Part shown: positions 1,172 to 62,097 of the stretch, piece after piece
How positions within the stretch are numbered: position 1 is the first letter of the stretch
Layout of the letters: each line of letters starts with the position of its first letter
NCBI GenBank assembly: GCA_965202585.1
Contig: OZ241833.1
Location: 43,958,001-44,022,000, forward strand
Source of the DNA: Thalia democratica
Taxonomy: Eukaryota
Length of the DNA: 64,000 nucleotides
Direction of reading: 5' to 3'
The notes under the pieces: model-generated
Database searches by the model: none
Seen by the model: the letters and a program-made list of their open reading frames with translations, nothing else
What the model was told of the DNA's origin: nothing
Translations under genes and position numbers: made by a program

Positions 1172-1549
1172 ATGATAAAGCTTTCATTTAAACTTGATGT
1201 TAGTTCGACCAAGTTGCTTATTGGATTTGTTGGAGTGTCAGCTACATTGAGAGCTCTTTTTTACTTGTCCCGTCAAAATAAATCAACCAAATCTTTAAAA
1301 AGTTTTGACAAAACACCCACAAAAAATCAAAATTCTGGTAGGTTGAATGGAAATAAAGTAGGGTTAGTAATTCAAAATATGGAAATTGTTTCGGATATGC
1401 GTAAGTTGCATGCTGAAAATGATCATCAAAAAATAAACTTTCCATGTGAAAGAATTCAGGCATTGGTTAATGATCCACAATCACAAATTTTTGTATATAA
1501 ATTGTTTCAGACTAATTTAATAAAATATAAACACTTTAAAAACTTTTAA
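1172..1549 (+). pseudogene. Family copy 1: 5'-only truncated copy (anchor plus start of linker, 125 aa)
   Basis: ORF starts MIKLSFKLDVSSTKLLIGFVGVSATL. Homology to intact copies ends at ~1485 (gatccacaatcac), then reads into AT-rich non-coding sequence. The upstream acceptor AG is changed to AT (1149-1150). Confidence 0.8.
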
Positions 1550-1623
1550 ATATTAGGGCTTTTGTTTAAAATATTTTTTTAATCAATTTAAAGCACTTTT
1601 AGTTGTATATAAGTTTATTTGCA

Positions 1624-2265
1624 ATGATAAAACTTTCATTGAAACTTGATGTTAGTTCGACCAAGTTGCTTATTGGATTTGTTGGAGTGTCAGCCACGTT
1701 GGGTGCTCTTTATTGCTTGTCTCATCAAAACAAATCAACTGAATATTTAAAGAGTGACGATGAAGTATCCACAGGAGAAAGAGAAAAACCTGGTAGATTG
1801 GATGAAAATAAAGCAGGGTCAGAAAATCATAACGTGAAAGTTGTTTCAAATATTTGTGAATTGCATGCTGAATATGATCATCACAATACAAACTTTGCAT
1901 GTGAAGGAATTCAGATGTTCGATAACAATTCGCAATCACGAAACACTGAAGCAACATTGACACAAGACAAGGATAAAACAGTTAATTCGGGTGGCTCTGA
2001 TGTTGAAAATAACAATAATGAAACTAACGATGATAATCCAGTAGAAAATAAATCTCCTGTAAATGATAAACCATTTATACCTAGAACACAAGAGCGCAAT
2101 GAAACCAATGAAGCTCCTAATAGTCGTGAAGACAAAAATATTGTTAGAAGAAATGAAGAAGAAACTACATTGGCAGAAGAATCAGCAGAAAAAGATATCG
2201 GAGAAGCTAATGTTTTCATCTATTATTTAGCGTATAGTCACTTTAATATCATGTTACTGTGCTAA
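1624..2265 (+). pseudogene. Family copy 2: truncated copy (anchor plus most of linker module, no C-terminal domain)
   Basis: ATG at 1624 (the ORF track extends upstream to 1603). Linker is nearly identical to copy 3. At ~2211 the sequence jumps into a repeat of the upstream region (gttttcatctattatttagc, cf. 158-177). Confidence 0.82.
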
Positions 2266-3222
2266 GTAAAAACATATTATACATAGTTAGTGGTACTTTA
2301 CTCCATTTCTTATACTTGAAGTATATTTATGTTTCAGTAATTTAAATGTTTGCAATTTCGATATGGTTTAGTTTCACTTATGAATTAATTTTTGTCTACA
2401 CTACTTGTACTCCTTAGTGTAACATTTTTATAAAAAAGTATTAAATTTTTAGAACGAACGTTAGGGGTTAAGGAAAATTTAAATTTTTGAAATAAAAAAT
2501 TAAAACACTAGCTGTGTATTTCCTTTCTTAAAAAAAGATTATATATAAAAAGAAACTATGACTTCATTAAATATCAAAATAAAAGTTATTAAATTGAAAA
2601 TAAAAAAAACTCACTTTATTCATATATTCTGTTAAAAGTTTATAATATGTTATTTTGCTAAACAAACACATGTTTTACTTAGTTATACTTTACTCTAATT
2701 CTTATACTTAAAATATAGTTAATAAATTTTGAAAATTATTTATGATATGATTTAGTTTTATTAATGGAATTAACTTAGATTGTTTATATTCTTTATTGAA
2801 AATTTTGAAAAAATATATAAATTTTTTAATCAATCTTAGAAAATAAGATAAAACTTGTTATTATCAAAAAAACAAAGTACATATATATTTACCTTTATAA
2901 AAAAATGTATAACCAAATAGATTTTATAAGTTCATTAGTAGTCAGAATAAAAGTTATAACGTTGAAGAAAATAAAAACTCACTTTGTTTTGTGTTTAAAG
3001 ATTATTAGAAACTTAATAAATTGCTAACTATCTTAATAATATACCATACATTGAAACTTTAAGTGATAGTTTATATTCACGAAATCTTGTTTTATTAATA
3101 TATAAATGGTTTTAAAATAACCTATATTCAGTATAAATGTTACTAAAATCATTTCTTTAAATCTATAAAATATTATTTTATTCAATTTAAAACACTTTTA
3201 GCTATTTAAAAGTCTACTTGCA
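2212..3222 (+). repeat. Direct duplicate of upstream region 159-1171 (upstream type P1)
   Basis: Near-identical text over the first ~500 bp, more diverged after. Related blocks occur at ~28490-29580 (+), ~20150-21300 (-) and ~58330-59090 (-). Confidence 0.9.
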
Positions 3223-4542: not shown

Positions 4543-7500
4543 TCTAAGTTAATACTTGTAGACTCTGAGCCTTAGATAATCTGGTCCTTTGGAAAAATTT
4601 ACTAGTTTTTGTTACGTTTCTTTAATATTTACATGTAACTTTATTTTTATTGACTCAGTTGAAGTTTGTTACTATGCTTTTTATTTTTTACAATAAAATT
4701 TTTGTTGATCAAACTTATAAATGCTAATTTGTTTTTAAATAAAACAAATTTATAACGGACTTTTGTTATCAACTAGTAAGAGCTCAGAAAAATACAACTT
4801 CGCTTTAGCACGGATTAAAACTATAGCATGAAGTGTAACTTTTGCAAGCACGTTTGATATTTTTTTAATTAGTAGTTAAACAATAATTAACGTTAAACCA
4901 AACATTTTTAAATCGAACTTAATACAGTCAGCATCTTGTTGAATACGCATTTTAGGCACTTTATAGTGTTATTTCAAGGAGAAGAATACTTACCAAAGAT
5001 AATTTTATTTAAATTTTTATCTAACTAAAGCAGAAATTATACTAGAAAGCTGGTCATCCGGTTTAATAGATTACCATTTATACTAAAAGAAACCATTCGC
5101 AAGTAGCATAAAGTTAAAAAACATCTTTTCTAGGCTTTTCTCTTAGTAAAGAACTATGTTATAACATCTTGATAGTCAATTTTCTTTTAACTAACTCTAC
5201 AAACTTTTTTGAGAACTTTACATTAAGAGTTTTGTAAACTATTTACACAAATTAAACACAGTTAAGATTTTATACTAAAGGCCCAAACAAATTAAAAGTA
5301 TGTAAACAGCTCTTAAGTCTAGCTAGAGATTAAAGCCATTTGAGCCTAGAGTTGTTTATAAATTACACAATTCGAGAGTAAGCATGTGTCTGTAAAAAAA
5401 GTGTACCACAACTACTTATTATATTATTTTTTCATGTCATTTTTCTATGTTGGTAGCATATATTGTACATGTTTAATTTATTTAGTATGTTGTTAACTGA
5501 CCTTTAGAAAAAAAGTAAAAAATCTTTTTGCTTGATCTGTTTTTCAAAACTTTTAAAGCAGTTAAAATATTTTAAGAACTTGGCAGTGATTTCAATAAAA
5601 GGTTTTTAGGGAGAACAATGTAATGCTAATTGCATTTTCTAATTATTAGAATGTAGTTATTTGAGCGTTTATTTATTTTTGTTTAGAAACGCATGCTTCG
5701 ATTTATTTTGGCTGATTCGATTCTTTTTTTTAGCTAATTGCAACCATGATTTTATGGTCCTTAAACTCGGTACTTGCTAAACGATGTTGTATGTTTTAAG
5801 TTAGATTGTTAAACCGAGGAATCTTCTCTTGTGGTGATTTGTTAGTAAAGTTTTGTTTTAATTGTTACTTGATGTGCTAGTTTTACAGTTCTTTTATGTT
5901 CACACTTATTAATTGTAAAACACATTTTTCTAATAACAAACTCGGTTTTAGTTTAAACAACAGTATAATTTCAGTAAAAACTTAATAAACCTATTAGGTT
6001 AAAAAACGTAAGTAGTTTAAAAGCTAACTTAAGTGTGTACATAAAGTATAAAGCTTGAATGTCAGTTATTTTCCATGTTATATATATCATTAAGCACATA
6101 CTTCAGTTGGATTGCCCCGTATCGTGTGTTAGTGCAGTTTTTAGCAATAAAATAGATAAATTACTATATTTTTACATATTTTTTAACAAGATTCATGTGC
6201 GAAAACTGTTATAAATTTTTATTATAATTTACTTTTTATCTCACAAGCTCAATCTATCGTTTAACTTATAAGTTTTTGTTGTATAATGTACGTACTGAAC
6301 TTTGTTCTAGTGTGCCTTTAAGTTTTGTTCCTATTTACATCAAAGTCGATGTAACTTTTCAATTATTCATACATAAACATATTAAAAATTCATGTAAAAA
6401 TATAAGCTAAATCTATTTTAAAAAAATTTGAAGTATTTTAGTGAGTAGTAATCTTAAAACTTTAAATACAAACTAAGTTTAAATAATGGTACAATTTTTG
6501 TAGATTAATTCGAGTGAAATAAAAAATTGTATTGCTTTTATTGTAGCAGTTAACTTTCTTTTGAAAAAGCTGTTGTTTTAACATCGTATAAATAAAAGTG
6601 GATTTTTAGACCTGGTAAAAAAAGTATCAAAGTGAAAATATAAAATTTGGTACATAAACTAAACTTCTATTAAACAATTTGTTCCCTGAATCGTCCGTAA
6701 TTTCATAATAATAAATTTTATAATGTATTTTTTACCTACTTAAAATAGTTTACAATTAGCTTTTAACTACATTTAATTGAATTTAAGTTTTGTGTCAAAT
6801 AATATTTTAATTTATACTCAAGTTTAGTTTTAATACATTTAGAACGTTATTAACATTTAAACAGGTATAATTTATTTTTTTACAGATGTATTTAGACAAA
6901 TTTTGTCAATTTAGTTATTATTAGATTTTGAAAACAGTAAGTCGTGCAAAAGTGATGACTGGCGCAAATTATGGCATCAGTAAAAATTGATGTCATGCAA
7001 ACAGTTGTGCAAAGTGCAGTCATAAAAAAGTGATAGTTTGTAGAAAAGTGACACTGGAAAAATAACTCTCCGTGCAATTGATGCTGTGTAAAAATGACGT
7101 ACTTAATTGATTGGATGGAATCTGATCGATTGTTCCGGGTAGGAATTTATCGTTTGGGAATTGGTCGGTTAGAAATGTGCGCGGGTTAAAACTTAGCAGT
7201 TCTATGTTAAATGTTATCATTTAATAAATGTATTTTATGAATAGAGGCTTTAATGTGTCTTATAAGGATTTCCAAACTACAAATTGCTACATCCATGTAT
7301 AAAAACATTGAATAACTAAACTACTATTGAAGATTTAACAAAAAAGGAATGCTAAAACTCTTTAGTTTTTTATATGATGATGTTATTGATCAGTTAGATT
7401 ACTAGGTAACTTTGTGGTAGGATTTAACTAATGATGACACTAAAGAATAAGCACAAAAAAAAACGGTTTTAAACTAGTTTATGTTATATATTCTTATTCA

Positions 7501-7696
7501 AAACAACTAGAGTATTTTATAATTAACAAAAAGTTTATTGTAGTAAATTCAACGTAAAAAAACTCCAAAAGTTGAAAACAAAAACAACAAAATCATTTTA
7601 TACACAAACATATTACAAAAGTAACAAAAAAATAATATAATCTTTTTCAATAGATTCATAATATGAAGCTCATAATAATATTTCAAAAAAGTACTT

Positions 7697-9562
7697 TCAT
7701 GTATATCCAACAACACCTTCTTCATACCATGTAAAAAAAGATTTAGTCAGCATAATTATATCTAATATGTCGTTTCGGACTTCATTAACCTCACTAAACG
7801 CTTTAGAGTTATTAAGCTTTTCAAGCGTTGACTTCAAACTGTTTTTGTATTTACTAAAAGCCGAGCTCAGGTCTTGCTGTTCATTATATTTATCAGCCTG
7901 GTCATTTTGTACCACTTGATATAATGATAATAAGCTTTGAATAGCGAAGCCTACTGCTATGTTAAACTGTTCTAAATATTCTACTATTCCATCAACTAAC
8001 TTTTTAGTACTTTCAGTCACTTTAAAATGGTTTTTAATTATTGAGTTATTGCTTGATGCTTTTTCAGATTTTACTTCTTTCCACAGATTTGTTCTCAAAC
8101 TGAATATTTGATTAACTAAAAATCGCAGATCAGGGTACGATAAACATTCTTGAATTTCGTCGTAAATTATGCCGAAAGTCTGACATCTTACTTTAATATT
8201 ATTGAAATTTTTTCTTCTATTTGTTTTGTTCCTTTTATGATCATTGAGCAAACTACGTAGGCTTTTGAACTGTTGCAGATTGACATTTATATACTGACTA
8301 AGAATTTCTAAACTATGTAAACAATAATCAAAATTAACTGGGTCTCTTTCGCTTTCTATTTTGTTAGATTTTTCATTTTGAACATTTTGACTATGCTTGT
8401 CAACACTTTTGTTGTTTCTGGCATCTCTTTGAGGACCAGTAGCTTCTCCTGTATCTTTTTCAGTTGATTCTTCTGTCAATAGGGGTTCTTCTTTTGTTCC
8501 AACAATCTTTTTGTCTTCATGAATATTATGAGGGTCATTAGTTCCATTGAGTTCTTTTGTTTTGGGCTTAACTAATTTTTCATTCACAGGAGATTTGTTT
8601 ACTTCTGGTTTCTTATCGTTAGTTTTACTATTGTTATTATTTACAACCAGTGGCCCTACATCAGATTCATCCAAACTGACCATTTTGTCCTTGATTTGTG
8701 TGATTGTTGCATCGGTATCAAGCAGTTGTTGATTGTTATTAAAAGTCTGAACCTCTTCAAAGTTTTTTGAATCTTCTACCAATTTAGATCTTTTATTTGT
8801 TCCAAAACCATTTTTGTCTTCACGACTTTTATGAGCATCATTAGCTTCACTTTGTTCCTTTGCTCTTGATTTATCTGGTTTCTTACTTACAGAAGAGTTA
8901 TTGTTTGAGTTTTCATTTTGAACAACACGGTTTACTTTACCAACATTTCTATTATTTTTGGTATATTTTTGAGGATTATTAGCTTCTCCGATATCTTTTT
9001 CTGCTGATTCTACTGCTAATGTAGTTTCTTTATTTCTCCCAACACTATTTTCGTCTTCACGACTATCAGGAGCATCATTGGTTTCATTGGGCTCTTTTTG
9101 ATTTATATCGTCTGGTTTTTTATTCACAGGAGAATTATTCACTTTTAGTTTGTCATCGTTAGTTTTACTATTATTGTTTTGAATATCAAAACCATCAGAA
9201 TTGACTATTTTTTCAATGTTTTGTATCAATGTAGCTTCAGTGTTAGGTGATTGCGAATTACTATCCAAAGCCTCATTGCCTTCAAGTACACAGTTTGTTG
9301 TGTGATGAACATTATCAGCATGAACTTTACAAATATTTGAAACAACTTTCACGTTATGATTTTGTGACCCTGCTTTATTTCCATTTAATCTACAAAAATT
9401 TTCTCTTTCTCCTGTGGATATTTCATCGTCAACCTTTAAAGATTTGGTTGATTTATTTTGATGAGACAAGTAGTAAAGAGCACCCAACGTGGCTGATACT
9501 CCAACAAATCCAATAAGCAACTTGGTCGAACTAACATCAAGTTTCAACGAAAGTTTTATCAT
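7697..9562 (-). CDS. Family copy 4, intact long (type B) member, 621 aa
   Basis: Uninterrupted 621-aa ORF with the same N-terminal anchor and ~2.5 linker modules. The C-terminal domain shares QQFKxLRSLL, LVNQIFxLRTNLWKEVK and TKKLVDxIxEYLEQF motifs with type A. Confidence 0.88.
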   Translation of the reverse strand: MIKLSLKLDVSSTKLLIGFVGVSATLGALYYLSHQNKSTKSLKVDDEISTGERENFCRLNGNKAGSQNHNVKVVSNICKVHADNVHHTTNCVLEGNEALDSNSQSPNTEATLIQNIEKIVNSDGFDIQNNNSKTNDDKLKVNNSPVNKKPDDINQKEPNETNDAPDSREDENSVGRNKETTLAVESAEKDIGEANNPQKYTKNNRNVGKVNRVVQNENSNNNSSVSKKPDKSRAKEQSEANDAHKSREDKNGFGTNKRSKLVEDSKNFEEVQTFNNNQQLLDTDATITQIKDKMVSLDESDVGPLVVNNNNSKTNDKKPEVNKSPVNEKLVKPKTKELNGTNDPHNIHEDKKIVGTKEEPLLTEESTEKDTGEATGPQRDARNNKSVDKHSQNVQNEKSNKIESERDPVNFDYCLHSLEILSQYINVNLQQFKSLRSLLNDHKRNKTNRRKNFNNIKVRCQTFGIIYDEIQECLSYPDLRFLVNQIFSLRTNLWKEVKSEKASSNNSIIKNHFKVTESTKKLVDGIVEYLEQFNIAVGFAIQSLLSLYQVVQNDQADKYNEQQDLSSAFSKYKNSLKSTLEKLNNSKAFSEVNEVRNDILDIIMLTKSFFTWYEEGVVGYT

Positions 9563-11699
9563 TGTAAATAAACTTGTTGTTTGCTGAAATCTTTAGTTAA
9601 AAAAAATTACAAAATTTAATAATTTAGTTATAAATAAAAGTTTTAATGATCTATAGTTTTTTATGTTAATATATTTCATCTAAATAATTTTTATAATAAG
9701 TTTAAGTCTTTGTGAATTTGAATAACATTGTGTGATTCAAACGTTTAGAACATTAATAATAATTTAACAGATTTAGAACAAAATTCAAACATTATTTGGC
9801 TTTTTAAAATCAGCTTGATTTTATTTTTAACTCAATAACTTTTATCTTTTAAGGTAAAAATTAAATCTTGAGCAACTAATTTCTTTTGATGAGATTTTTT
9901 TAAATAAAGTAAATTTAGCAACGTTTTAAATTTGTCATATTTACAGAAACATATTTGTTAATATATCAAAATTTATATCAATTTTATTGTAGAGTACCAG
10001 CCTAAAACTACTGTTTTATTATAAATGTACTAAATTTTATATCTAACAGTAGCTGAAAAGATAATTGTAATTGAAATTTAATAACAACAGTTGTACTGCA
10101 AATTATTCATGTAAGTGCATTTGTTAATTTTTCAAGGAAAACATTCTGTTTGTTAACTTGTTAGGTGTTTAAACACTATTAATCATTTTCATTTATTGAT
10201 TAAGTTTGAATTATTAGAAGTTTCAAAGGAATACATACTTACTTACAAATAAGATGATTTAATAACTGATTTAAACAAAACAATTTCAATTTTAACAAGT
10301 TTTACGTAGTTTTAACAGAGTCAAAAAATATTTAACAACTATGCAACATTTTTTAATTTAATTATAAAATAAAAAATGACAATAATCCCATTTAACGAAG
10401 CTAGAAAATCAAAATTTCAAAAAAAGGGTATACATTAGTGGAATAGTGTTGAAACAAAACACATTTTTATACATTGTTAGACAAAACATGATAATTATGT
10501 TGAGTTCTGTCTCAATATGTACTACGTAGAAAATTTAAACAAATTTTAGGAGCTTTGATAGTTAATTTTAGTTTTCATTAAAAGTCTACGTTCATTTATT
10601 AACTACTAAACAAATTCAAAGTTGGAACTCTATAGTATACTTCACAACAGTGCATACAATAAAGTAATTGTCAAATGATTTGTTATACGGATTTATTCTT
10701 GCATATTTATGTTGGTGCAAGTTTTTAGATTCGTCTAAATTTATTTAACTAGTGAAGATCACTGAAAACTACAGTAAGCAATAAAAACATAGCTAAACTA
10801 AATTTATATATTTAATATGTTTAAAGTTATATAATAAGTTTAAATAAAGTTAATTTATTAATTTAAAAAGTTTTGTAACTGTCAAAACATAAAATAAGTT
10901 AATTATTTTTTTCTATTATATACTTAATCTAGCTTAGCCTTAAAATTTCTCATTTTCTTTACTAAATTATACTATTACAAGGATAATTATAATTCATATT
11001 AAAACACTAATTTTTCAACTAAAATTGAGTTGAATTATACAAATCATAAAAGTTTTGACCGGTAATATTCATAAAACATATTGTTTATATCGACAGTTAA
11101 ACGAAAGTAAAAAACATATATGTTTTGTAATTCTCAGCTTAACACTACTTGTATCTAGTCAAGTTGTTGTTTTTAAACATTTTTAATAAAATTAAAAACT
11201 TGCATGACATATTTCTTTATATCGTAGTAATTTTTTTTGTAAAAATAGATAACAAAAAAAACAAACATGGTTTCTTTTAATTGTTGTAATACCGATGCTT
11301 GATTTTTGTTACAGTGATTTCTATAAAAAAAAACAAACAAAAGTTTAGCATATAAAACGTTTAAATTAAGTGAACTTAATATAAATTTTTATACATAATA
11401 TCTTAAAAACTATTTTTACTTAAATATTATGTACTAAATTTTTACGTTTTTTTTTTCATATTGTTTTATTTTATTAGTTTAGTTTTCTTTTCTATATAAT
11501 TATAAGTTAAAAAATAATCTTCTCTTTTTAGTAGTTTTTACTATTCGTGTGTCATCTGTTAAAGTGCCTGAGGTATTAAATTATAATTTTAACGTTAAAA
11601 AAAATAATAAAGATACTAAAAAGCATACAGCAAAACATTTAATCATTAAAGCTATTTACAAATGCTATTTCATAAACTTTTCAAACAGTCAAAACATCG

Positions 11700-12375: not shown

Positions 12376-13909
12376 GCAACTAGAGACTTATTTTGCTGAT
12401 GGTAGGTAGTGTTTTGTTGAACACTAACCAAAAACTCGTTAGAATTATAAAATACTCTTTTTTTTGATGAGCTAAGCCAATACGTGCAAATTTTTTTCTT
12501 TGCTAAACCGACTACACTACCGTAACTACCGTACGTCTTAACGATTTCGTACTATGGGACAAAAGAACGTAAAAATAAAACGAATAATTTCACTTTTAAA
12601 TGCTATAAATAAAATTGGTCTTGTCCAAACAGCTGTAAATAAACCGAACTGTGCAGTGTTAGGTGTAATATTCATATCATGCTCGTGTAGTATTGGATCT
12701 GATGTTTAATCGAAAAATTCTCTTATACTCAATATGAATTCAAGAAAGTGTGTGAAGAGTAATTAGATAATTAGTAGCTTCAGATAATTCCGATGTAAGA
12801 TTAGAATCTTATTGTGAAATTACTTCCAATGAAGATAGTAGTTCAAAATTACATTCATTCAGCTGGAAACTTGTCACTTAGTAAGAAGGCCACAGTCAAA
12901 GTTGCAATTAATTTAAATGAATACATACAAAGGTTTCTAACTTGATTTAATTTATAAGACTATGTGAGTTAAGTTATATGTAAATATTTAAAAAATATAT
13001 AACAAGGTTGGTAACCAACAAAAAATATGTAAATAAAATAAGTACTTTTATCATTCAGATTATGCGCTTTTACTTTTTTTGAAGGCTATTATGTAGAATA
13101 GGTATATGAATTTAATAAAGTCTAATTTAATCTAGTTAAGAAAGTATAAAAAAATAAAAAGAACTTGGTGCTAAGAAAAAAAAATAGTTGGTTAAATCTT
13201 TATTAGACTTATAGATCACACAGCTTACGAACTACGAAAATACATTAATTTGAAAACTTTTAACTGACTTTTAACCGCAAAGTATAATTTATAACCTCAA
13301 CTTATTTAAAAAAAATTATTTTATGTTATAAGGTGTATAAATAGCTGTATTAAAACATTTTTGATTGAAATTAGTTTTAATTACTCTCCATTAATCATAA
13401 CTATATCTTAATAACATATGAACTGTACTTTACACATGATAAAAATGTAAATAGCTTAATAACTTAATTTGTTCTAAAGGTTTACTAGTCCCAAAACATT
13501 GAATTTAGACAGATTAAAAACGTTTATGATTAATTGTAACATTAACATATTTATAAAAATTTTTTATAAATAAATTTATATTGTTACTCATTAATCCCTA
13601 TACCAACTTTTTTTTATTATCAATTAGTCCTGTAAGCTACTTCTACTCATGCAAAATACTTTAGTAAAATTAAAAGACACACAAAATTTTCAACACAGAA
13701 CTATTGTCGCCAATAATGTTTTTAGCATGATTAAGTAGTGTGTAAAATTTTTTTTTTTTGTTTTTTCTTTGACTTTTTATATTAGAATTATTAACAAAGT
13801 TTTAGCTACTTTTTTACAAATTAAGAATATTAGATTTATTGTTTAAAAAAGCTGTTTTATGTGTTTGTTGAATTAAAAATAAATTCAGGTATTTACAAGT
13901 CTATTTGCA
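12376..13909 (+). promoter_or_regulatory. Upstream region type P2, shared with 24190-25718; part also at ~33200-33545 and ~41575-41890
   Basis: Shared blocks such as gatttcgtactatgggacaaaagaacgtaaaaataaaacgaataa and gtgcagtgttaggtgtaatattca lie at matching distances from the ATGs at 13910 and 25719. Confidence 0.6.
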
Positions 13910-18200: not shown

Positions 18201-18277
18201 AAATACCAAAAAAATAATATAATCGTTTCCAATAGATTCATAATATAAAGCTTATAACAATATTTCAAATAGTACTT

Positions 18278-42889: not shown

Positions 42890-43740
42890 TGCGGGTGATT
42901 ATAAAAATATTCTCAAACTAGCCAAATTTTACATCGAACTTTAGCCCTCGCAAGGTTTCGCTCTTTAACGTCCTGGATCTGTTTTTAAAGCTAGATGGAT
43001 GTACAAAGTCATTTACGCTCTTAAAGTAGTTTTGATTTCACAACAGAACTCATTAAAAACTATTTTAGACACCGCATGTTTAAAACAACTGAAACGTTTT
43101 TTTTTACATAAACTGCTACCTTCCCTATTGGATCAATTGTACTGTAGCTTCTTCAGCTCCTGGCAATGAGTTGGACCTATTAATCAAACAAAAATACAAA
43201 AGTACTGATAAGTTTTGTGCAACCTCTGCGTTAAGTACTATGATAAACCATCTCTGGTGTCTTGTTAGAGAAATTGTTCCTTTAAGCTTGTTTGATGATT
43301 TTACCAGTAAATCAGTCAAAGCTAAGGTTGCTGATCTTTAAATTATAAAACAAATCAGTAAAACACCTAAACATTTAGAAAAAAAACAATGATTTACCTA
43401 ATCGTCATGTTTAATCTAATGAGAAGTATAATTTAGCAGACTTTCTTGGAAGTAGTTACATGCTCTTTTTTTATCCTAGACTGCAGTCATTCATTTCTTA
43501 TTAAACCGCCAGAACAATGGACTAGCGACAAAGACTACTTAGAGGCAAGAGAAATACTTAATTACATGAAAGTAGTCAATGATGCCGTCGAAAGAGGTGT
43601 AAAATTGTCCAACGATTTTGTAATTTCGTCGAGAAATGAAGTCACGTATCAAAATAGTTTATAATTTATCAAGGAGGATAGGAAGCAACTACCAAACCTT
43701 GGACTTATAAATAGTTCAAGAAAGAAGATATTGTAACTCG
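42890..43740 (+). mobile_element. Second copy of hATm-like transposase remnant
   Basis: PG...KARWMYKVIYALK near 42972, and VVNDAVERGVKL in 43446-43664. Confidence 0.68.
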
Positions 43741-48299: not shown

Positions 48300-49700
48300 T
48301 ACACTAAATGAAACTTTACAAATGATTGCAAATGGAGTACGTGATTGCACCATACCACAATCAAACATGTTAAATCTTTTAAAGTCTGTTACTGGAGGTT
48401 TGTTCCAATATAATAAGCAATTATATACACAAATAGATGGCGTAAGCATGGGAAACCCACTAGCGCCTACTATAGCAAATTACTTCATGGGAACATTGGA
48501 AAAAAATCTGTTTAACACCGAAGATGAAAATAATCCAGTTTTATATCTTCGATATGTCGACGACATATTCTGTATCTTCCAAAAAGATGTTCCATTCGAA
48601 AAATTCCACAAAAAGTAAAACAAACTACATAAGTCTATCAACTTCACATATAAATTAGGTGGAAACGAACTCCCATTTTTGGACATTAACATCAAACTAA
48701 AGAGAGAGGAAATAACAACAAAGGTACACAAAAAAGAAATTGATAAAGATGTCATTTTAAATTTTAGTGCAGTGGCACCAATTAAATGGAAAAGAGCTCT
48801 AATACTGTGGTTTGTAAACAGAGCTAGAATTATAGCTTCTACGCATAACATTTACAAACAAGAAATCACAAACTTAAAAGAAAAATTCTTTAAAAATGGT
48901 TATCCAAAGAAATTTGTTGATGACATAATTGAAAGATCGCTTAGTATTAATAAAGACTGCACTAAACAAAAACTAAGTAACTCAGACTTCAAAAATATTG
49001 TAAAGGTACCTTATATTGAAAAACCTAGCATCGAGTATAAAAAGAAACTAGAAAAGCTTCTAAACAATTACATCGAAGACTTCAAAGTAATTTTTACTAC
49101 AACAAAAGTAAGCAATTACTTCAGTAATAAAGATAAGACACCCCATGAATTAAAATCAAACGTGGTCTATGAGTATAAATGCTCTTATGATAAGAGTATC
49201 CAGTATATTGGATTCACTTCACGACCATTAGTAGAAAGAATTAAAGAACATTTAAAAGACAAAACATCTGTATCGGACCATATTAGTAGTTGTAATGTTT
49301 GTAAAAATGAAAAGATAACTGTTAATAATTTTGGAATTTTAAAAGAATGTAGAAATAAATTTGAGACCCTGATAAGTGAAGCTCTACTAATTAAACGATA
49401 TAATCCAATTTTAAATAAACAATTAATTAAACCGGGTATTACCCATACTCTAAGAGTTTTTGATTAGTTTGATATATAATAGTTTAACAATTTGTTAGTA
49501 TTCATGTAAAATATAATTTTATTATAGTTTATAATCTTAATTTATAAAAAATTTTATATAATGTATCACTTAAAAAAAAAAAATTTTTGTAAACATAGTT
49601 GTTTATCACTAATTTTAGTTATTTTTGCACAGTATTTTGTTGATAATGACTAATGGATAGTCGAAACGTCGTCATGCGAATAAATTTTAAACTGAGAATG
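48300..49700 (+). mobile_element. 5'-truncated Penelope-like retroelement (RT C-terminal half plus GIY-YIG endonuclease)
   Basis: QIDGVSMGNPLAP and YLRYVDDIF RT motifs (48322-48618). One in-frame TAA at 48616-48618, then the same frame continues (NFTY..., LPFLDI, KNGYP) to VVYEYKC...YIGFTSRPLVERIKEH (GIY-YIG). Stop at 49467. Confidence 0.93.
49640..49675 (+). ncRNA. Minimal hammerhead-ribozyme-like motif (U3/A8 core variant) at the PLE 3' end
   Basis: TTGATAAT, stem GACTA/TAGTC with loop ATGGA, then GAAAC-GTC. Position and form fit PLE hammerheads, but helix I is poorly paired. Confidence 0.5.
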
Positions 49701-50182
49701 TGTTTCTTATTGAATTGGTAAATAAAAACTCCAGTATCCCCACCTGTTTTTTAGTTTTTATTGATATTAAAAGGTTTTTAGATTTAAATACAGTATATTT
49801 AAGAAATATGCAAAATATTAAAAAAATTAGGATAACAAAGTAATTTAAATAATGTTTAAGGACAGATATAAGTTAATTTGCGAAACAAAAAAGATATCTC
49901 AGGATAAATTTAATATGTAAGGGTAGTTTTTTTTTTGCTCTTAAAAAATGGCAATCCTAGTGATATAGAACTAATTAAGGATTAAATAGTCTTTCAAATA
50001 CTTAAGTATAGTTTAAATAAAAAAACAAATTGTTCTTAATGATGTTTAAGTTTACCTAAATCTTAGCTTGTAAACTTTTGAATTGATTTCTTGGAGTAAT
50101 TCCTAAAGTTTTCCATTTGAAAAAAATACTGAAATGGCACTTACCAAGTAAATTTTTTAACTAAAAGCCACACCTATTTTAA

Positions 50183-50519
50183 CAGGGTTACTACTTTACC
50201 TAGAAAAACCTGGAATTTGACAATTAAGGCAAAAAAATCTGGAATTTTAAATTATTTTTACATGTTAAGTGGAAAATTTTGTTTGTCACAAAAATTTACC
50301 ATATAGATAAATTAGTTTGTCGTCATCAATTTTTTTTTTAATAAAAAACTTATTTAAGTAGCTTAATAGTAAATTTTCAATTATTTATACTATTTAACAC
50401 AGTTTTTTACCTTAAACTAAAGTTTAAATTGAAAATAGACCCAACAAAAGTACTTTAGAAAACCTGGAAGAAATTTTGAAGTCCTAGAAAAAATTTGCCA
50501 AAATTCAGTGGCAACCCTG
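50183..50519. mobile_element. MITE with CAGGGTTGCCAC-type terminal inverted repeats (probably hAT)
   Basis: Left cagggttactac, right gtggcaaccctg. No convincing TSD seen. Confidence 0.65.
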
Positions 50520-51338
50520 TGTTAAACTAAGTGCTTGTAGTATTTTAATGAATTTTAAAATGGTGAATATTAAAATAATCTTAATATATAAAAGTTTATT
50601 CTCATTTCAATAAAATCATTTTTAATTAGTCCAGCTAGAAGCAACAAAATTGAAATAGGGTTGATTAAAATTCAGATACTCAGAAACTTTTTTAAAATTT
50701 TTAGTTTCAGTCTAACTCAGGCTAGCCTTATTGTTTTGCATGCAGGGTGGTTCAAGCCACTACGGTGTTATTATAAAACATTTGAGGTAATTTTAAGTGT
50801 TTTTAAAATTCCTAGTCCCTTTGAATTCTCTTAATCATAAATGAGATATTGTTGTTCCATATTTGATAATGTGATATATTATAGCAAAATTTTTTCAATA
50901 AGTTAATTTTTATTGTTATTAAAAGGTTTTTAGATTTAAATACAATATATTTAAGAAATATGCAAAGTATGAAAGAAAATCAGGATAACAAAGTATTTTC
51001 TAACAATCTTTAAGGTCATTAAGGACAGATTTAATTCAGTTTGCCAAACAATAAAGACATCTCAGGATAAATTTGGTATGTAAGGGTAGTTTTTTTGCTC
51101 TTGAAAAATGGCAATCCCAGTGATATAGAATTTATTCAGGATTACATAGTCTTTTAAATTCTCCAGTATAGTTTAAATAAAAAAACAAGTTGTTCTTAAT
51201 GATGTTCAAGTTTACCTAAAGCTTAGCTTGTAAATTTTAATGATGATTTCTGGAGTCATTCATAGACTCTTCTATAAAAAAAAACAGAAATTAGACTTAC
51301 CAAGTAAATTGTTTAACTGAAAGCCACACCTATGTCAA

Positions 51339-51653
51339 CAGGGTTGCTACTTTGCCTGGAAACCTGGAAAAACCTTGAATTTGACAGTTTAAGCAAAAAA
51401 ACATAGAATTTTAAATTATTTTAATATGTTTGGTAGAAAATTTTGATTTGACACAAAAATCATCAAACATTTTTATTAAAAAACACATTTGAAGTAGCTT
51501 AATAATATATTTTCAATTTTTATACTATTTAACACAGTTTTTTACTTTAAACTGAAGTTAAAATTAAAATAGACCGAAAAAAAGTACTTTAGAAAACCTG
51601 GAAGAAATTTTGAAATCCTAGAAAAAATTTGCCAAAAGTCAGTGGCAACCCTG
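51339..51653. mobile_element. Second copy of the same MITE inside tandem unit 2 (third, left-decayed copy ends at 52778)
   Basis: cagggttgctac ... gtggcaaccctg. Confidence 0.68.
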
Positions 51654-54045
51654 TGTTAAACTAAATGCTTGTGGTATTTTAATGAATTTTAAAATAGTGA
51701 ATATTTAAATAGACTTAAGATATAAAAGTTTATTCTCATTTCAAAAAAATATTTTTTAGTTAGTAGAGCTTGAAGCAACAACATTGAAATAGGGTTGATT
51801 AAAAGTTAAATACTCAAGAAAATTCTTAGTCTCAGTCTAACTCAGGCTAGCTTTTTTGTTTTGCATGCAGGATGGTTCAAGCCACTATGATTTTATTAAA
51901 AAACATTTAAGGTAATTTTAGGTGTCCTTAAAGTTCCTAGTTTCTTTTTAATTCTCTAAATCATAAATGAGATATTGTTCCTCCATATTTAATGATGTGA
52001 TATTTTATAGCTAAATTTGTTCAACAACTTATATTTTATTGTTATTAAAAGGTTTTTAGATCTAAATACAATATATTTAAGAAATATGCTAAGTATTAAA
52101 GTAAATCAGGATAACTAAGTATTTTCTAATACTGTTTGAGGTCATTAAGGACAGATTTAAGTGAGTTTGCCAAACACAAAAGATATCTCAGGATAAATTT
52201 GATATGTAAGGGTAGTTTTTTTTGCTCTCAAAAAATGGCAATCCTATTGATATAGAACTTAATAGAGATTATAGTTTAAATTGAAAAACAAGTTGTTCTT
52301 AATGATCTTCGAGTTTACTTAAAATTTAGCTTGTGATTTTTAATAATAACCTGGAATTATTCCTAGAGTCTACCATTAAAAAAAAATTGGAACTACATTC
52401 ACCAAATAGATTTTCAACCAAAAATCCACACCTATCTTATCAACACTTATGTTGCTACTTTGCCATTGAAACCTGGAAAAACCTGGAATTTTATACAATT
52501 TTTACATGTTAAGTAGAAAGACTTAGATTTGACACAAAAAATCTACTATATAGATAAAATATTTTTCATCATCAAAAATTATTTTATTAAAAAATAAATT
52601 TTAAGTAGTTTTACAGTATCTTTTCAATGTTTTTATAGTATTTAACACAGTTTTTACCCTAAAGTTAAGTTTAAACTAAACTTAAACTAAAAATAGACCA
52701 AAAAACAAGTAGTTTTAAAGACCTATAAGAAATTTTGAAAACCTGTAGAAAATTTCCAAAAAGTCCATGGCAACCCTGTGTTACGCTTAAATAACCACAA
52801 TATTTGTTTTTAAATAAAAGTAACTAATGTTTAAAATTTTCAAAAATTTACATTGTACTAAAAATAGTTTCAATAGTAATGTGGTTTAAAACTAATTTGT
52901 CACACTAACATGAAAACTTTAGCACACTTGAATTTTTATTTCTCAGTCTGACTAAAGGTAATTTATTTAACTCCTGATAGTTAAAATATTTCCTAAAATA
53001 TAAGACAGGTTTTTCTAAATTGGAAACGAGGTTACGTGAAAAACTCAGGACAGTTTAAGGTTATTCAGTACAGATTCTTCGATTAAAAAAGTAGCAACAG
53101 TGTATAATCAATTGCAAACACAAAATAAAGCTATCTGTGATAATCTTATAAAGCAATCTTAGAATATGTATATGTTGCTAACAGCTTAATTTTTAACTTG
53201 CTTAGCAGAAAAAGTGACAATCTTTTCAACCCTGAACTTCACAGAGTGCAAAAATTTAGTTTTTGAAATGAACAATATCAGCTAAACGTATGCAGATATT
53301 GTAAACAATTATTTCTGGTCAAAGAGTAACAAAATATATAAAAAATTTTTTTTAATTTCGCTAATTTTAATGCAGTTTTTTTGTCGTTTTTATTTTTCTT
53401 TAACATCGTTGTTATATACAGTTAATCTAATAAAGTAAGAATTGTTGAAATTAATTTAAGTATGTAGTTAATACTTGAAGTATTTTAGGACCACTGGGTA
53501 TTTAGTAAAGATAGCGGAGATATGTGTTAAAAATTAGTATAAAAGAGGAAAGCAATAAAAGTAATGTGAAAATAAGGTTAAATAAAAAAAAATCATAAAA
53601 AAAGTATCAAGTTAAAAATTTATAAGTTTTATTTGATATTATAATTACATGTTTAAATTAAAATATTTACTTAACTATTTATAAGCGTAAAAGCATGTTA
53701 GTAAAGTTAATTAAAAGCTGTTACGTATTCCTGCCACTAGAGGCCCTTTAAAGTTAGATACTTGGTTGCACAGAGAGTTTAGTTTATGTGTACATATTTT
53801 TATTAGCTGGTTTAAAGAGCTAAAGGTAGCAAAACAGGTTTTAAATTTTTAATAAATTTACTAGAGTTTGAGCTTTAAGTCTTTTTTTTTAGAATTGACA
53901 CCAATATTTTGCTTCATGACTTACGAAATTTATATCCAAACAACAACCATTGTCTAAACTTTGTTTTTATTAATTTGCACACTTGGTGTATAATTATTCT
54001 GATAAAATTGTTATTGCAGATATACACCTAAGTAATAAAATTAAA

Positions 54046-54870
54046 ATGTCCACTGATACGACAAACTCATCTGATAGCGAATTTTCATACTCCGTTGATT
54101 CGGACACGTACTCATCAGACTCGAGCTGCGACGAATCAGCAACCGAAGTGGCGGACCGCTTCGAAGATCAATGCTCGGCAGGAGACAAAGTTTGCTTAAA
54201 GTGCAAGCAGCCGTCGCACTACCCCCTGGCGTGCGCGATGATGAAAGACTGGATGGACAAACGCCAGAAAGTAGAAGAACCGGAAGAGAGCGACTCCGAC
54301 GCGGATAGCGATGAAGGACCTGAAGACGGTGAACGTGAAGACCAGACGCTGAAAGGCTGGTTGGAACAGAAGTTTGTTAGCATAGAACAAGAACAAAACG
54401 GCTCCGTCAGCGATGAAGGGCCTGAAGACCAGTTCGCGGAGTACTTGCGGGTGTACTCCAAGCATGAAAAGAGCATCGAGAAAGAAGGTAAAGTCTCCAT
54501 GGAAGAGGTGTACGAGAGGCTCGAAAATCCTGCCGAAAATGATGATGAACAGATGGAAGTTGACGACAAAAGACCGTCCACCTTCCACGAGCGAACGTTC
54601 TTGCAAAGGGCGCGCAGAGCTTTGAGAGAGTCCCGCCGATGCGTGATGCTAACCTGCGTGTACCGCTACAACATCGCTGGTGAAAAAAAAAGGATAATTT
54701 TCAAAGAAAGCACGGACATCTTGCAGTCGCACGTTGAAAAGCTCGGCGAGTTTTTGGAAAATGACGTCAGCAAGCTGTTTGACGGCGGGAAAATGAGGGA
54801 GATGGAGTTGCTTGTTAGCCTTTGTGAAGAGCAAAGCAAAGCCATCCTCGAGTATATCAAGGAAAATTAA
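54046..54870 (+). CDS. Ariadne/ARIH-derived RBR-like protein lacking RING1 and RING2 (acidic N-terminus, one IBR zinc site, Ariadne domain), 274 aa
   Basis: CSAGDKVCLKCKQPSHYPLACAMMKDW matches the IBR end (C-x2-C-x4-H-x4-C at 54193-54234). FAEYLRVYSKHEKS, FLQRARRALRESRRCVMLTCVY, IIFKESTDILQSHVEKLGEFLENDVS and LCEEQSKAILEYI match remembered ARIH1 Ariadne-domain helices. Likely start is AAAATG at 54046, with acceptor-like ttattgcag at 54011-54019 and AATAAA at ~54930. Confidence 0.82.
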   Translation: MSTDTTNSSDSEFSYSVDSDTYSSDSSCDESATEVADRFEDQCSAGDKVCLKCKQPSHYPLACAMMKDWMDKRQKVEEPEESDSDADSDEGPEDGEREDQTLKGWLEQKFVSIEQEQNGSVSDEGPEDQFAEYLRVYSKHEKSIEKEGKVSMEEVYERLENPAENDDEQMEVDDKRPSTFHERTFLQRARRALRESRRCVMLTCVYRYNIAGEKKRIIFKESTDILQSHVEKLGEFLENDVSKLFDGGKMREMELLVSLCEEQSKAILEYIKEN

Positions 54871-55567: not shown

Positions 55568-56384
55568 TCAAAAAAATCCAGCAAAATTTTTAATAATACC
55601 CCCTAAAAAGATATCAATTACGAAGTTTGTGTGAATAATACTTCTTATGACGTTATCACAAATACTGGTGTGGCTACAGCTGTCAAGTTTTTCATGTGAT
55701 AACTTCAAATTTTCTGTGTATTCATTGGAAACAGAATTGAATTTTTCAGTCAATTGAGTTTGATTAGAAAATAGCAGTTTGTGCATAAAAAACAAACTTT
55801 AACCTACTAAGTCTACTGCTATTTTGAACTGTTTTAAAAATTCGACTATATGACCAATCAACTTTATAGTACTTTCAGTTTTGTCACCGACCTTTGAAGT
55901 ATTTATGCATGATACCACACATTGCATTTCTTTCCATAAGTTCGTTCTCAAAGCGAATATTTGGTTCACTATGCTTTGTAAAAGTAAATTCGTAAACCTT
56001 CCTTGAATATTTTCGTAAATTTCGCCATAAGTCTGACATCGTGTTTTTTTAATTTCGTTGAACACTTTTATCCTGTTTCTTTTGATGCCATCATAATCGT
56101 TAAGCAAGCTACGCAAACATTTAAACTGTTGCTAATCAACATTTAATTACTGAGAGTTTTGAAGTTTTAGTAATGACAATCTAATGTATAAACGGCTTGA
56201 CCATTGTAATTGGATTGTTTGAGTTTTCGTTTTGAACATTTTGCTTAAATTTATCAGCGCTTTTATTGTCTGTTATATCTTTTTGAGGAATATTAATTTC
56301 TCTCATATCTTTTTTAGTTGACTTGTCTATCGATGTAGCTCCTTTTTTGTTCCAAAACACTGTTTTAAGTCCGATTTTGAACAA
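55568..56384 (-). pseudogene. Family copy 13: C-terminal half of a diverged type A (A') pseudogene
   Basis: Fragments LRSLLNDYDGIKRNRIKVF...IVNQIFALRTNLWKEM in 55799-56116, in three frames. No 5' half. Confidence 0.8.
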
Positions 56385-58330: not shown

Positions 58331-61300
58331 TGCAAATAGAAATGTAGATTCCTGAATGTGTTTTGAACTGTAGAAAACAATATTTTTTTTAGAATTTAAG
58401 AAATAATCTTAAAACTATTTATACTGAATATAGGTTGTTTTAAAATAGTTTATACATCAATAGAACTGAATTTTGTGAATTTATTTAATTTATTAATTAT
58501 TTTTATAATTAAAACAAAACCGTATCAGATTTTTTTTAAATTTTTAAACCATAATCTTATTTCAGTATAAGAATTAGAGTAAAGCATAACTTGTATATTT
58601 ATATATGTTTATTTAATACTATAACATATTGTAAATTTTTAACACAATTTTAAAATAAAGTGAGTTTTGTTTATTTTCAAATTTATAAGTTTTATTTTGA
58701 TGTTTAATGAAGTCATAGTTAGTTTTATATATATAGTTATTCTTTAAGAAAGGAAATACACAGCTAGTGTTTTAGCTTTTTTTTTAATATAAATTTTATC
58801 TTATTCCGTAATGTTGGTTCTTAAAATTCAAGATTTTTTAATAAAATTGTTGCACTAAGGATAATAATTAGTATAGATAAAAATTAATTCATAAGTAAAA
58901 CTAAACTATTTCGGAAATTGCAAAAATTTTAAATTACGAACTATAAATATACTTCAAGTATAATAAATGGAATAAAGTGTCACTAACTATGTATAATATG
59001 TTTTAATTTAGTACAGTAAAATGATATTAAAGTGACTATATTTTAAATAATAGATGAAAACTTTAGTAGCTCTAGTCGTTGCTCAACCTAAATTTGTAGT
59101 GTGTAACGAAAGCAGTTATTTAAGTTTTATAAAATATTTCTGAAAGCAAACTATCACAACTCTGTAGAACAAAATATATTTCAGATAGTTCTCAACAGTT
59201 TTAGTAACTAAACTGATGAAGAAATTTTAACTTTAACAAAAGTAGCTTTAAAATTTTTTATTGTTTACTTAAAGCTACTAAATTTTGTTTTAACAAAATC
59301 TTTTTTTTAATTGATGTTCTGTCCAGAGTTTTTGATAAATCAGTAGCTTCCTAACTTAGTAATTTTTAACATTTATGTCAAAATATTGAAAAACAAAACT
59401 AAATATAGCAGTTCTGTCTTAATAAACCAGAGCAAAAGATAAATTACTGCACAACAATGAAATATTAATGAATCATGTAAAATTTACAAATATGTAAAGA
59501 TTCGGGAACATCAAGAAATTGTCAAAAAAAAAAACTACTTATTTTAAAGATGATATATTAATTAGCTCTTGAATATTAACATGAAAGTCAAAATTAGAAA
59601 GAGGTTAAAAAAAGAAGTACTTTAGTACAATAGAAAGTTGATAAACAAAAATGAAATGCTATCCTTGTAACATTATTAGTAAAACATATATTTGTAAGCT
59701 TAGTGAAAATATTTTTCAAATAGCTAAGTATCTTATTTCTTTCAATAGCTTTGTTAGTTCACTACAGCTTTAGTTTAGTGATACCTTTAACAGAAACATT
59801 TTTCAAACCAACAAAGCTTACAGATTCGATGCTTCTGGAATTAAAAATAAGTCTGTAGATGAGCCTTGTAAGACCCTCATTTGTATATTTGACTTTAGAA
59901 TGAAAAGGTTTTAGATTATATATTGCAGTTAAGCTTAAACAAATAGGTGTCATAATGTCGAAGAACATTTAAAATCGAAATTTAAACAAGACAGCTGTTT
60001 TAAAAGCCATTAGAACAACAAATAAAGTTTAAAAGATGTGCTTACAACTTGATTAAGAACAACTAAGCAAATAGTTTTATGTTAACTTATAAGCACATAC
60101 AAAAAATAAAGTATAACAAACTTTATCAAAAAGTTTTGTACAAAAATACAAAAGTTTAAAAGATAACTGAACTTTATTAACAAAAAAAAAGTTGTTTGCC
60201 ATGCAATGTTGCCAGCATATTCTGGCAAACGCCATACTAGATTTTACAATAAATCTATAAATTATTATATACTTCACAACAACTAGCTTTGAGAATCTTA
60301 TCAACAATGTTATTCAAAACAGTAGTTTTTTGTAAACTTATGTACTTTTCTTAATATTTTAAACTTTTTTTAATTTCGAATGCTGTATTTCTTTTAAGTT
60401 TTGAAGTATACGTGTTACTTTGTTTAAATAGTTAATCTTAAATGTCCAAAGAATTTTAAAGAAGATTAACTTGTACAAAAACAGATAACAGTTCTTTGAA
60501 AATAAGCCAAACTTATAAGTGTAAATTTCTTTCTTTACTGAGTAATAACTTTCACAATTTAAGCATTCTAAATTTATTCTTTTTCTGAATTTTTGATGAT
60601 TTTCTTTCAAATGGTTACTGCTACTCCGAAACTAGATGATATTTCAATTTTAATGTTTTCTACGACTATCAAAAATAAAACCGAAGTCTTGCATTATGCA
60701 CAATAAGAAAGAAACAAAGATAACCAACTGTAAGTAAATAAGTGGCAAATATACTCAAAACTTTTGAAAAACAACGTTTTAAATTTACCTTATTATCTTA
60801 AGTACTAGTTTTGTTTCAAAACCTTTGTACTTAAGAAATTTAATATTCTTTTAGCAGATGAGGATTTTAAAAATATTTATCTTCGAATATTAATATAAGG
60901 ATTTTCTATACTTAACTCCAAATTTTAGACTTATTTGTTAACTTTCTTTATTTACTTCAATTTTTTTTAAACTGTAAACTTATCTTTGTGCAGTAAAAGT
61001 TGTTTCTTCTTCTAGATTACTTGTCAACTAACTTGAACAACACTAATTCTAAATTTCCCTCCCTAGAGAGTAAGTTTTTAAAGATATACTGTGCCAGTGC
61101 TATTCATAAGTTCATTTGTCTCTAAATATATAAGTTATTACAATGAAGGTAATTTAAACTGACTTATAGCAGTTTATACTTTTCATATTTTTCATACGCT
61201 CGAAAAATGCTTAATAAACATTAATACTGAAAACTATAAAAGTTTACTTGTTCTTATTTAAAATTAAACAACTTAGATAAAATAACTTAACATATAATAT

Positions 61301-61397
61301 TTTTGATTATCAAAGTTAATGTTTATCACTAAATTATGTAATTTTGTGATTTTTATTCAATTTAAAACACTTTTAGCTGTTTACAAGTTTATTTGCA

Positions 61398-62097
61398 ATG
61401 ATAAAACTTTCATTGAAACTTGATGTTAGTTCAACCAAGTTGCTTATTGGATTTGTTGGAGTGTCAGCTACGATTGGTGCTCTATATTACTTGTCTCATC
61501 AAAATAAAACAACCAAGTCTTTCAAAAGTGATCACAAAATATCCACAGGAGAAAGAAAAAAAATTTGTAGATTGAATAAAAATAGAGTAGGGTTAGTAAG
61601 TCAAAATATGGAAACTGTTTTGGATATTCGTAAATTGCATCCTAAAAATGATTATCACAATACAAACTTTGCATGTGAAGGAATTCAGATATTGGATAAT
61701 TATTCGCAATCACCTAACACTGAAGTAACATTCACACAAAACAAGGAAAAGTTAGTCGATTTGGATGGTTTTGATATTCAAAATAACAATAATAAAACTA
61801 ACGATGATAAATCAGAAGTAAATAATTCTCCTGTGAGTGAAAATCCAGACGATATAAGTCAAAAAGAGCACAATGAAACCAATAATGCTTCTAGTAGTAG
61901 TGAAAACAAAAATATTGTTGGAAGAAAAGAAGAAACTACATTGGCAGAAGAATCAGCAGAAAAAATATCGGAGAAGCTATTAATCCTAAAAAAGATACCA
62001 AAGATAATAAAAATGTTGGTAAAGAAAATCATGTAGTACAAAATGGAAACTCAAACAATAAATCTTCTATAAATAAAAACCAAGAGAAATCAACAAC
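61398..62097 (+). pseudogene. Family copy 15: 5' half only, frameshifted near 61965 and interrupted at ~62097
   Basis: 212-aa ORF with anchor and first linker module. Homology stops after gagaaatcaacaaca. Upstream type is shared with copies 11 and 12. Confidence 0.8.

Follow-up and report, generated by a model that had tools for sequence, protein, structure and literature searches.

The DNA analyzed here is a 64-kb window of the Thalia democratica genome (contig OZ241833.1, positions 43,958,001 to 44,022,000, forward strand; positions below are those within the window). It contains no N and has about 25% GC throughout, except for an 800-bp island at 54.05-54.87 kb. When its four longest open reading frames (ORFs), which are the intact copies, were used as tblastn queries against the whole window, 15 loci of one gene family were found between 1172 and 62170, ten on the plus and five on the minus strand. 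The proteins have three parts: a conserved N-terminal hydrophobic helix (the putative anchor), a disordered acidic linker, and an all-alpha C-terminal head of about 215 amino acids (aa). Four copies are intact, two of A-type (439 and 438 aa) and two of B-type (621 and 623 aa), and these functional genes are intronless ORFs. The other 11 copies (73%) are truncated or carry nonsense substitutions and frameshifts. A degenerate 37-nucleotide (nt) motif spanning the start codon occurs 13 times in the window and never in dinucleotide shuffles, and both loci without it are C-terminal fragments (23761-23955 and 55580-56366). Across the long ORFs a repeated N-terminus, MIKLSLKLDVSS.KLL.GFVGVSAT.GALYYLS, is evident. 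An earlier note, made from the sequence alone, had proposed about 15 loci of one architecture on both strands, four of them intact and 11 truncated or disabled, in subtypes A, B and A'. The count and architecture are borne out by tblastn, the start motif and AlphaFold2, the disabled copies by the tblastn pieces and lesion alignments, and the subtypes by a tree of the C-terminal domain.

The cluster begins with two plus-strand remnants: an N-terminal fragment with about 106 aa of homology (L1, 1172-1486; its ORF extends to 1549) and a truncated copy with the anchor and 196 aa of linker (L2, 1624-2211). A 1.1-kb upstream module is common to several 5' ends in the cluster, and both remnants are cut off where the next module begins, which for L2 is at 2207. 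The first intact gene, A-type L3 (3223-4542, plus strand, 439 aa, stop TAA), converges with intact B-type L4 (7697-9562, minus strand, 621 aa, stop TGA), which has an extra repeat unit in its linker. The pair is duplicated as intact A-type L5 (13910-15226, plus strand, 438 aa), with about 89% DNA identity to L3 including the flanks, and L6 (18281-20144, minus strand), a B-type pseudogene 95% identical to L4. A B-type C-terminal remnant follows on the minus strand, with four in-frame stops and a homologous 3' flank adjoining it (L7, 23761-23955). The remaining intact gene, B-type L8 (25719-27590, plus strand), encodes 623 aa counted from the conserved ATG; a further in-frame ATG lies upstream at 25668, beyond a conserved acceptor-like AG.

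On the plus strand there follow an N-terminal fragment of about 64 aa (L9, 29581-29772) and three B-type pseudogenes: L10 (29807-31130), with frame changes and at least six in-frame stops, L11 (37679-39537), with three frameshifts and three nonsense codons, and L12 (45474-46790), with two frameshifts, two nonsense codons and a 540-nt linker deletion. Two A'-type copies lie on the minus strand, a C-terminal fragment with stops and frame changes (L13, 55580-56366) and a pseudogene with many stops (L14, 56860-58330). The last copy, L15 (61398-62170, plus strand), is truncated to the anchor and linker; like L1, L2 and L9, it was recognized by tblastn together with the start motif.

Architecture and relatives of the family

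In the AlphaFold2 model of the full-length A protein, residues 12-35 form a helix, residues 36-225 are disordered (predicted local distance difference test score, pLDDT, about 30) and residues 226-437 form a helical domain (pLDDT 75-97). Modeled alone, the head reaches a pLDDT of 84.7 and a predicted template modeling score of 0.85; it consists of seven helices, four of them 27-44 residues long, with no strands. Thirty-two of its positions are invariant across eight sequences, many of them polar (Q, K, R, C, Y, W, D, E), and these include one invariant Cys but no conserved Cys pairs. The A head is basic (net charge +12), that of B only +3. The linker, rich in N, E, K, S and D, has a net charge of -17 in A and -9 in B, and is built from repeat units of roughly 125-175 aa each: one in A, about two in B and about three in the metagenome protein P0001.

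Residues 15-33 are the sole strong hydrophobic segment in a Kyte-Doolittle profile, and the N-terminal tail before the helix is 11-14 residues long and without a signaling motif. A Lys after the helix is common to the window copies and the metagenome protein P0011. The helix is probably a retained membrane anchor rather than a disposable signal peptide. The anchor is the best conserved part of the gene, and its codon positions 1 and 2 vary less than position 3, which argues that the helix is retained and functional. Over the 15 copies, the first 120 nt have pairwise identities of 0.84-0.93; in the linker, all three codon positions are equally conserved.

It could instead be argued that the helix is a cleaved signal peptide, and that the linker and bundle are extracellular or glandular products such as a matrix, adhesive or lipid- or membrane-binding protein. 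The N-terminus does resemble the n-h-c layout of a signal peptide, its hydrophobic core being just some 18 residues long and moderate in hydrophobicity. In addition, families of secreted products are often tandemly arrayed and lineage-specific. However, no part of the protein is better conserved than the hydrophobic segment, and the GFVG.SA motif of this segment is invariant even in P0011, which would be unusual for a cleaved signal peptide; nor does the single invariant Cys of the head, with no conserved pairs, favor an extracellular product. A secreted family is therefore improbable in our judgment.

The orientation of an anchored protein is harder to assign, as the acidic, cysteine-poor stalk and head have a cytosolic appearance while this mode of evolution is commoner among surface proteins. 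An exoplasmic or surface location may be entertained tentatively, as may, to the same degree, a cytosol-facing one on an organelle or the endoplasmic reticulum; release after signal cleavage is an unlikely third topology. No C-terminal hydrophobic signal of the glycosylphosphatidylinositol (GPI) type was found in the family proteins. Sequon counts were rejected as evidence, being uninformative at the Asn content of the family.

The earlier note had called the family unrecognized and lineage-specific, and both descriptions stand. A Pfam-A scan of the window proteins gave best E values of 0.07-0.19, far below gathering scores, NCBIfam gave nothing significant and PADLOC no match. Searches of PDB sequences yielded no match with a single protein as the query and E values of at least 0.17 with a profile. 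A fold match was defined as a Foldseek E value of at most 1e-3 or a template modeling (TM) score of at least 0.5 to the confident head model. Neither value was reached against PDB (best E 0.057, TM at most 0.38) or BFVD (best E 0.048, TM at most 0.44), and both yielded generic helical bundles only. The profile, sequence and fold searches thus gave no match to a known housekeeping or transposon-derived protein.

Among 1.84 billion proteins, a HMMER search with the head profile found 11 representatives, all from ENA metagenomes. A word search with the whole A protein found four metagenome proteins, and with residues 1-110 alone two of the same four. The homologues lie on contigs of 0.5-2.9 kb with 27-31% GC in ENA marine assemblies, mostly from Tara Oceans (PRJEB4352) plus one other sample. 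No relatives were found in JGI metagenomes by protein profile or by the 37-nt start motif, nor any relative of the family in IMG/VR, and an exact look-up of one of the window's proteins retrieved no recorded entry. Judged by these searches, this appears to be a taxonomically restricted orphan family with detectable relatives only in marine plankton metagenomes. P0011, at 28% identity, keeps the anchor (LSL.LDVS...GFVG.SA), the acidic linker and the head, and the architecture is therefore conserved over real divergence. In the metagenome copy behind P0004 (L004:2-406, 480-1379) a stop lies within the multi-unit linker; broken copies therefore also occur among the environmental relatives.

Upstream of the family genes, conservation is limited to about 45 nt before the ATG (e.g. 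3178-3222), beyond which the sequences diverge. Within this interval, most window copies have TTTTAG or TTTCAG some 22 nt ahead of the start codon. The same acceptor-like AG is present in the P0002, P0003 and P0011 loci, and a pyrimidine tract with AG was noted for the loci designated L002, L003 and L005. This AG may be a 3' splice acceptor, used either by an intron in the 5' untranslated region or in spliced-leader trans-splicing. An AATAAA is found about 150 nt past the family stops and is uninformative at such AT content.

Duplication, decay and probable exchange within the cluster

Self-comparison of the window shows how the cluster was built. The segment 3177-5454 is 89% identical to 13864-16136, and 5626-9577 is 88% identical to 16137-20159; combined, these two blocks make up a duplicated unit of about 10.7 kb bearing the convergent A/B pair. 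A further block, 30137-36869, is 88% identical to 38542-45180. The copies carry along 0.4-1.5 kb of conserved upstream sequence, in modules that vary between subgroups. This pattern is one of segmental duplication and unequal crossing-over. The cluster grew by tandem and inverted segmental duplication including the flanks, after which most copies decayed. Tandem duplication, divergence into subtypes and frequent pseudogenization, the hallmarks of birth-and-death evolution, are all present, and the turnover by duplication and decay proposed in the earlier note is seen in the self-comparison, the 15-locus map and the lesions.

Broken copies were left unmended, and comparisons used either their raw DNA or the individual tblastn pieces; three pseudogenes (L6, L11 and L12) were each aligned to the nearest intact copy to call lesions. 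These are disrupted by frameshifts in A-runs and also by base substitutions that create stops: in L6, codons 37 (AAA>TAA) and 596 (CGA>TGA) have become stop codons, and a +1 insertion shifts the frame at codon 54. Because stops also arise by substitution and not just by homopolymer indels, sequencing slips alone are not the explanation. The disabled copies are genuine pseudogenes.

Other origins for the disruptions were considered. Introns as the cause of the frame changes were rejected, as consecutive tblastn pieces touch or overlap, with no gap between them, and nonsense substitutions occur as well. An alternative genetic code is unlikely, given that the intact genes stop at the aligned C-terminus with TAA or TGA. 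Duplicates created during assembly were also rejected, the copies being 5-30% different from one another. Separately, the A-run at codon 54 (AGAAAGAG-AAAA) has gained one nucleotide in L6 (19984) and lost one in L12 (45634), which makes it a hot spot for frameshifts in the family.

Selection was assessed by pairwise Nei-Gojobori ratios of nonsynonymous to synonymous substitution rates (dN/dS), by partition. For the head, in comparisons where dS reaches 1.4, the ratio is 0.27-0.57; the linker has values of 0.5-1.0 and the anchor of 0.1-0.7. In sliding windows along the head it is 0.2-0.45 over the first two thirds and 0.4-1.3, with much noise, in the last third; a single window at 4.98 is an artifact of near-zero dS. 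These values point to purifying selection on the anchor and head core, with the linker evolving near neutrality. Neither the pairwise partitions nor the sliding windows gave a robust sign of positive selection. There is a hint, not a demonstration, that the last third of the head, which forms one end of the bundle, evolves faster.

The same data bear on whether the family has any function left. If it were decaying and non-functional, the four ORFs would simply be the youngest copies, unhit so far. In keeping with this, 73% of the copies are dead, the linker evolves neutrally, and the linker of the P0004 locus is interrupted. However, stop-free ORFs of 438-623 codons are very unlikely to have lasted by chance at 25-32% GC, the anchor is better conserved at codon positions 1 and 2 than at position 3, the head ratio stays at 0.27-0.57 with dS as high as 1.4, and the architecture is kept in a homologue only 28% identical. 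We consider a family without function very improbable.

An IQ-TREE analysis of head DNA separates A (L3, L5, L14 and P0001) from B (eight rows) by a long branch with 100/100 support, the A'-type L14 falling within the A clade with the metagenome copy P0001. The A/B split is old, because metagenome copies fall on both sides of it. By contrast, the tree of the first 330 nt is star-like and does not distinguish A from B, the split appearing in 0% of bootstrap trees. Neighboring A and B genes are separated by a dS of about 0.96 in the head, as against 0.12-0.29 in the anchor and near-neutral linker. The simplest reading of these trees and distances is that gene conversion or unequal crossing-over has exchanged the 5' half between A and B and left the heads distinct.

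From turnover of this kind the earlier note had concluded that the cluster is a lineage-specific conflict system, that is, one acting in innate immunity or allorecognition, or as an A/B toxin-antidote or drive pair, with an arms race behind the turnover. Several observations are in line with it: 11 of 15 copies are dead, the distribution is extremely narrow, two old types stand intact side by side as convergent A/B pairs, and window ratios of 0.4-1.3 mark the last third of the head as faster. Yet turnover alone is also typical of many lineage-specific families outside conflict, and the step from turnover to conflict is without direct support. No match to a defense, toxin, immune or drive domain was found. 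Overall dN/dS is below 1 in every partition, the sole high window coming from near-zero dS; the note's own suggestion of measuring dN/dS on the C-terminal domain, followed here in a pairwise version, thus gave values below 1 in anchor and head that do not speak for conflict. Moreover, the B partner of the duplicated A/B pair (L6) is dead, and the pairs are therefore not kept as units. A conflict system appears unlikely on this evidence.

Mobile-element remains and a ligase-like neighbor

Remains of mobile elements lie between the copies. No other conserved host gene, tRNA or Rfam RNA was found in it by tRNA and Rfam scans. A degenerate Penelope-like retroelement occupies 48199-49467 on the plus strand, with a reverse transcriptase (RT) block containing YVDD followed in the same frame by a GIY-YIG endonuclease; it has a single in-frame stop (48616-48618) and a GC content at third codon positions (GC3) of 0.24. 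Directly 3' of it, at 49751-52783, a unit of about 1.15 kb, a period beyond the reach of TRF, is repeated in tandem about 2.6 times with 80% identity. These repeats may be pseudo-LTR-like (long terminal repeat) remains of the Penelope-like element. Unclassified transposon-like ORF fragments are present at 33961-34170/42304-42513 and 35091-35312/43437-43661, with the motifs NPPICNSVKTNIGKRF... and EQWTSDKDYLEAREILNYMKVVNDAVERGV...; they sit inside the duplicated 6.7-kb block 30137-36869/38542-45180.

Such debris raises the possibility that the family is cargo, or a coding gene, of a transposable or viral element that spread it. Both the element remains between the copies (Penelope-like at 48.2-49.5 kb, ORF fragments at 34-36 and 42-44 kb) and the 0.4-1.5 kb of upstream sequence that travels with the copies would be expected under such a scenario. 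Nevertheless, the upstream modules differ by subgroup, and the large, irregular blocks that were duplicated resemble those of segmental duplication. All copies known within the window lie in one cluster, the proteins have no transposase, RT or capsid domain, and neither IMG/VR relatives nor a BFVD fold match were found. Spread by an element is thus highly improbable.

The GC-rich island corresponds to an intact plus-strand ORF that is not a member of the family (54046-54870; 274 aa, or 295 aa for the ORF as listed). It has about 50-55% GC within DNA of 25% GC, and a GC3 of 0.61 as against 0.23 in the family genes. An acceptor-like TTGCAG lies about 28 nt before its ATG and AATAAA 60 nt past its stop. 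A phmmer comparison with human ARIH1 gave a weak, collinear match (whole-sequence E 3.7e-4): residues 59-95 (295-aa numbering, used throughout) align with the end of the ARIH1 IBR domain, its last zinc knuckle, and residues 190-294 align weakly with chain residues 354-458 of the Ariadne domain (domain i-Evalue 0.0073). Pfam IBR matches the ORF only over the last 30 or so profile positions (E 0.019, 15.5 bits vs a cut-off of 24.3), and there is no Pfam match to the Ariadne domain. Nor is there a Pfam RING match to indicate RING1; the ORF begins with an acidic stretch rich in S and D, and the 1.3 kb upstream holds no plus-strand ORF of at least 35 aa with a Cys/His cluster. No Cys occurs between residues 85 and 228, an interval of acidic low complexity between the IBR and Ariadne-like parts, and the ORF therefore lacks the Rcat (RING2) domain and its catalytic Cys. 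Relatives of the ORF were found neither in IMG/VR nor in a word search restricted to proteins of 150-480 aa, which would miss full-length RING-between-RING (RBR) ligases.

With RING1 and Rcat missing and GC3 at 0.61 vs 0.23, the earlier description of this ORF as a catalytically dead, foreign-looking ligase module holds. The ORF could have been acquired recently from a foreign source or could derive, as something like a decoy, from an RBR ligase. Its use as a pointer to a host-pathogen setting for the family fares less well, as only position ties the two together. A bolder scheme would have the A and B heads as interacting halves of a self/non-self or toxin-antidote system, held on the same membrane by the shared, homogenized anchor. 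The cluster would then be a new eukaryotic conflict locus built on an unseen helical fold, with the foreign Ariadne-only ORF possibly a cullin-RING/ARIH decoy. This is a long shot in our estimation.

A proposed tethered helical head and its known counterparts

On balance, the cluster probably represents a restricted multigene family of an AT-rich eukaryote, whose products consist of a membrane helix, an acidic stalk and an all-alpha head. In such proteins the N-terminal helix would tether the molecule to a membrane, and the stalk, variable in length with one to three repeat units, would keep the head away from it. Some points weigh against this proposal. The AlphaFold2 model of the A protein, made with an 8-row family alignment, rests on just eight sequences. 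The anchor helix has no more than moderate hydrophobicity (mean Kyte-Doolittle 1.6-1.7), and the charges on either side of it are equivocal, a Lys on the N-side of the helix being present in the window copies and absent from P0011. In the short 5' alignment, an approximately unbiased (AU) test leaves monophyly of A formally unrejected (p = 0.18), a caveat for the proposed exchange of 5' halves. The last steps of the mechanism are conjecture: the head might work by binding rather than catalysis, and A and B might be non-redundant and might pair via the small-residue face of the anchor (GFVG.SA).

Should the intact copies prove to be expressed, they would constitute a new protein family with a clear architecture and a domain that is an orphan at the level of fold, and would open a way into the membrane biology peculiar to an abundant lineage of marine plankton. 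At present it is one among many taxonomically restricted tandem families. As an example of mosaic evolution the cluster is tidy: its two 3' halves are ancient, and its 5' half has apparently been exchanged. The head fold has no known match; the protein family is new while its evolutionary mode is familiar.

Known systems resemble the family in part. Toxin-antidote and drive genes such as wtf and Spok differ from it, as the family has a single hydrophobic helix and no catalytic domain, and is not multi-pass, a nuclease or a kinase. BAR-domain and other membrane-binding bundles supply the top-ranked Foldseek descriptions, and the basic charge of the A head (+12) is a point in common. However, TM scores are 0.17-0.33 with E above 0.05 and the B head is only +3, and the family is not a member of that group. 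For the neighboring ORF alone, the counterpart is ARIH1/HHARI, an Ariadne RBR E3 ligase, with which it shows weak collinear matches to the last IBR knuckle and to the Ariadne domain; it differs in having no RING1, Rcat or catalytic Cys, and in its GC3 of 0.61 against 0.23.

Parasite arrays of helical-bundle proteins (trypanosome VSG, HpHbR-type proteins, Borrelia PFam12/CspZ and Plasmodium SPECT1) are among the weak fold matches. Like the family, they combine bundles of long helices with pseudogene-rich arrays, mosaic gene conversion, low-complexity sequence rich in N, K and E, and an AT-rich genome. In contrast to them, the family has its anchor at the N-terminus with no GPI-like signal and dN/dS below 1, and the Foldseek matches are not significant (E at least 0.057, TM at most 0.38). 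A Penelope-like retroelement, moreover, presumably fits an animal-like genome better.

The natural-killer complex of KLR/Ly49 receptors, type II proteins with anchor, stalk and head, offers a further comparison. Unlike its C-type lectins, the family head is all-alpha, with seven helices and no strands, and no relation in sequence or fold was found. The family tail of 11-14 residues is without a signaling motif, and its membrane orientation is only putative. The likeness is one of layout and of evolution: both have an N-terminal helix, a stalk and a C-terminal globular head, and in both the genes form a tandem cluster that uses both strands, is rich in pseudogenes and shows signs of exchange among its paralogues.

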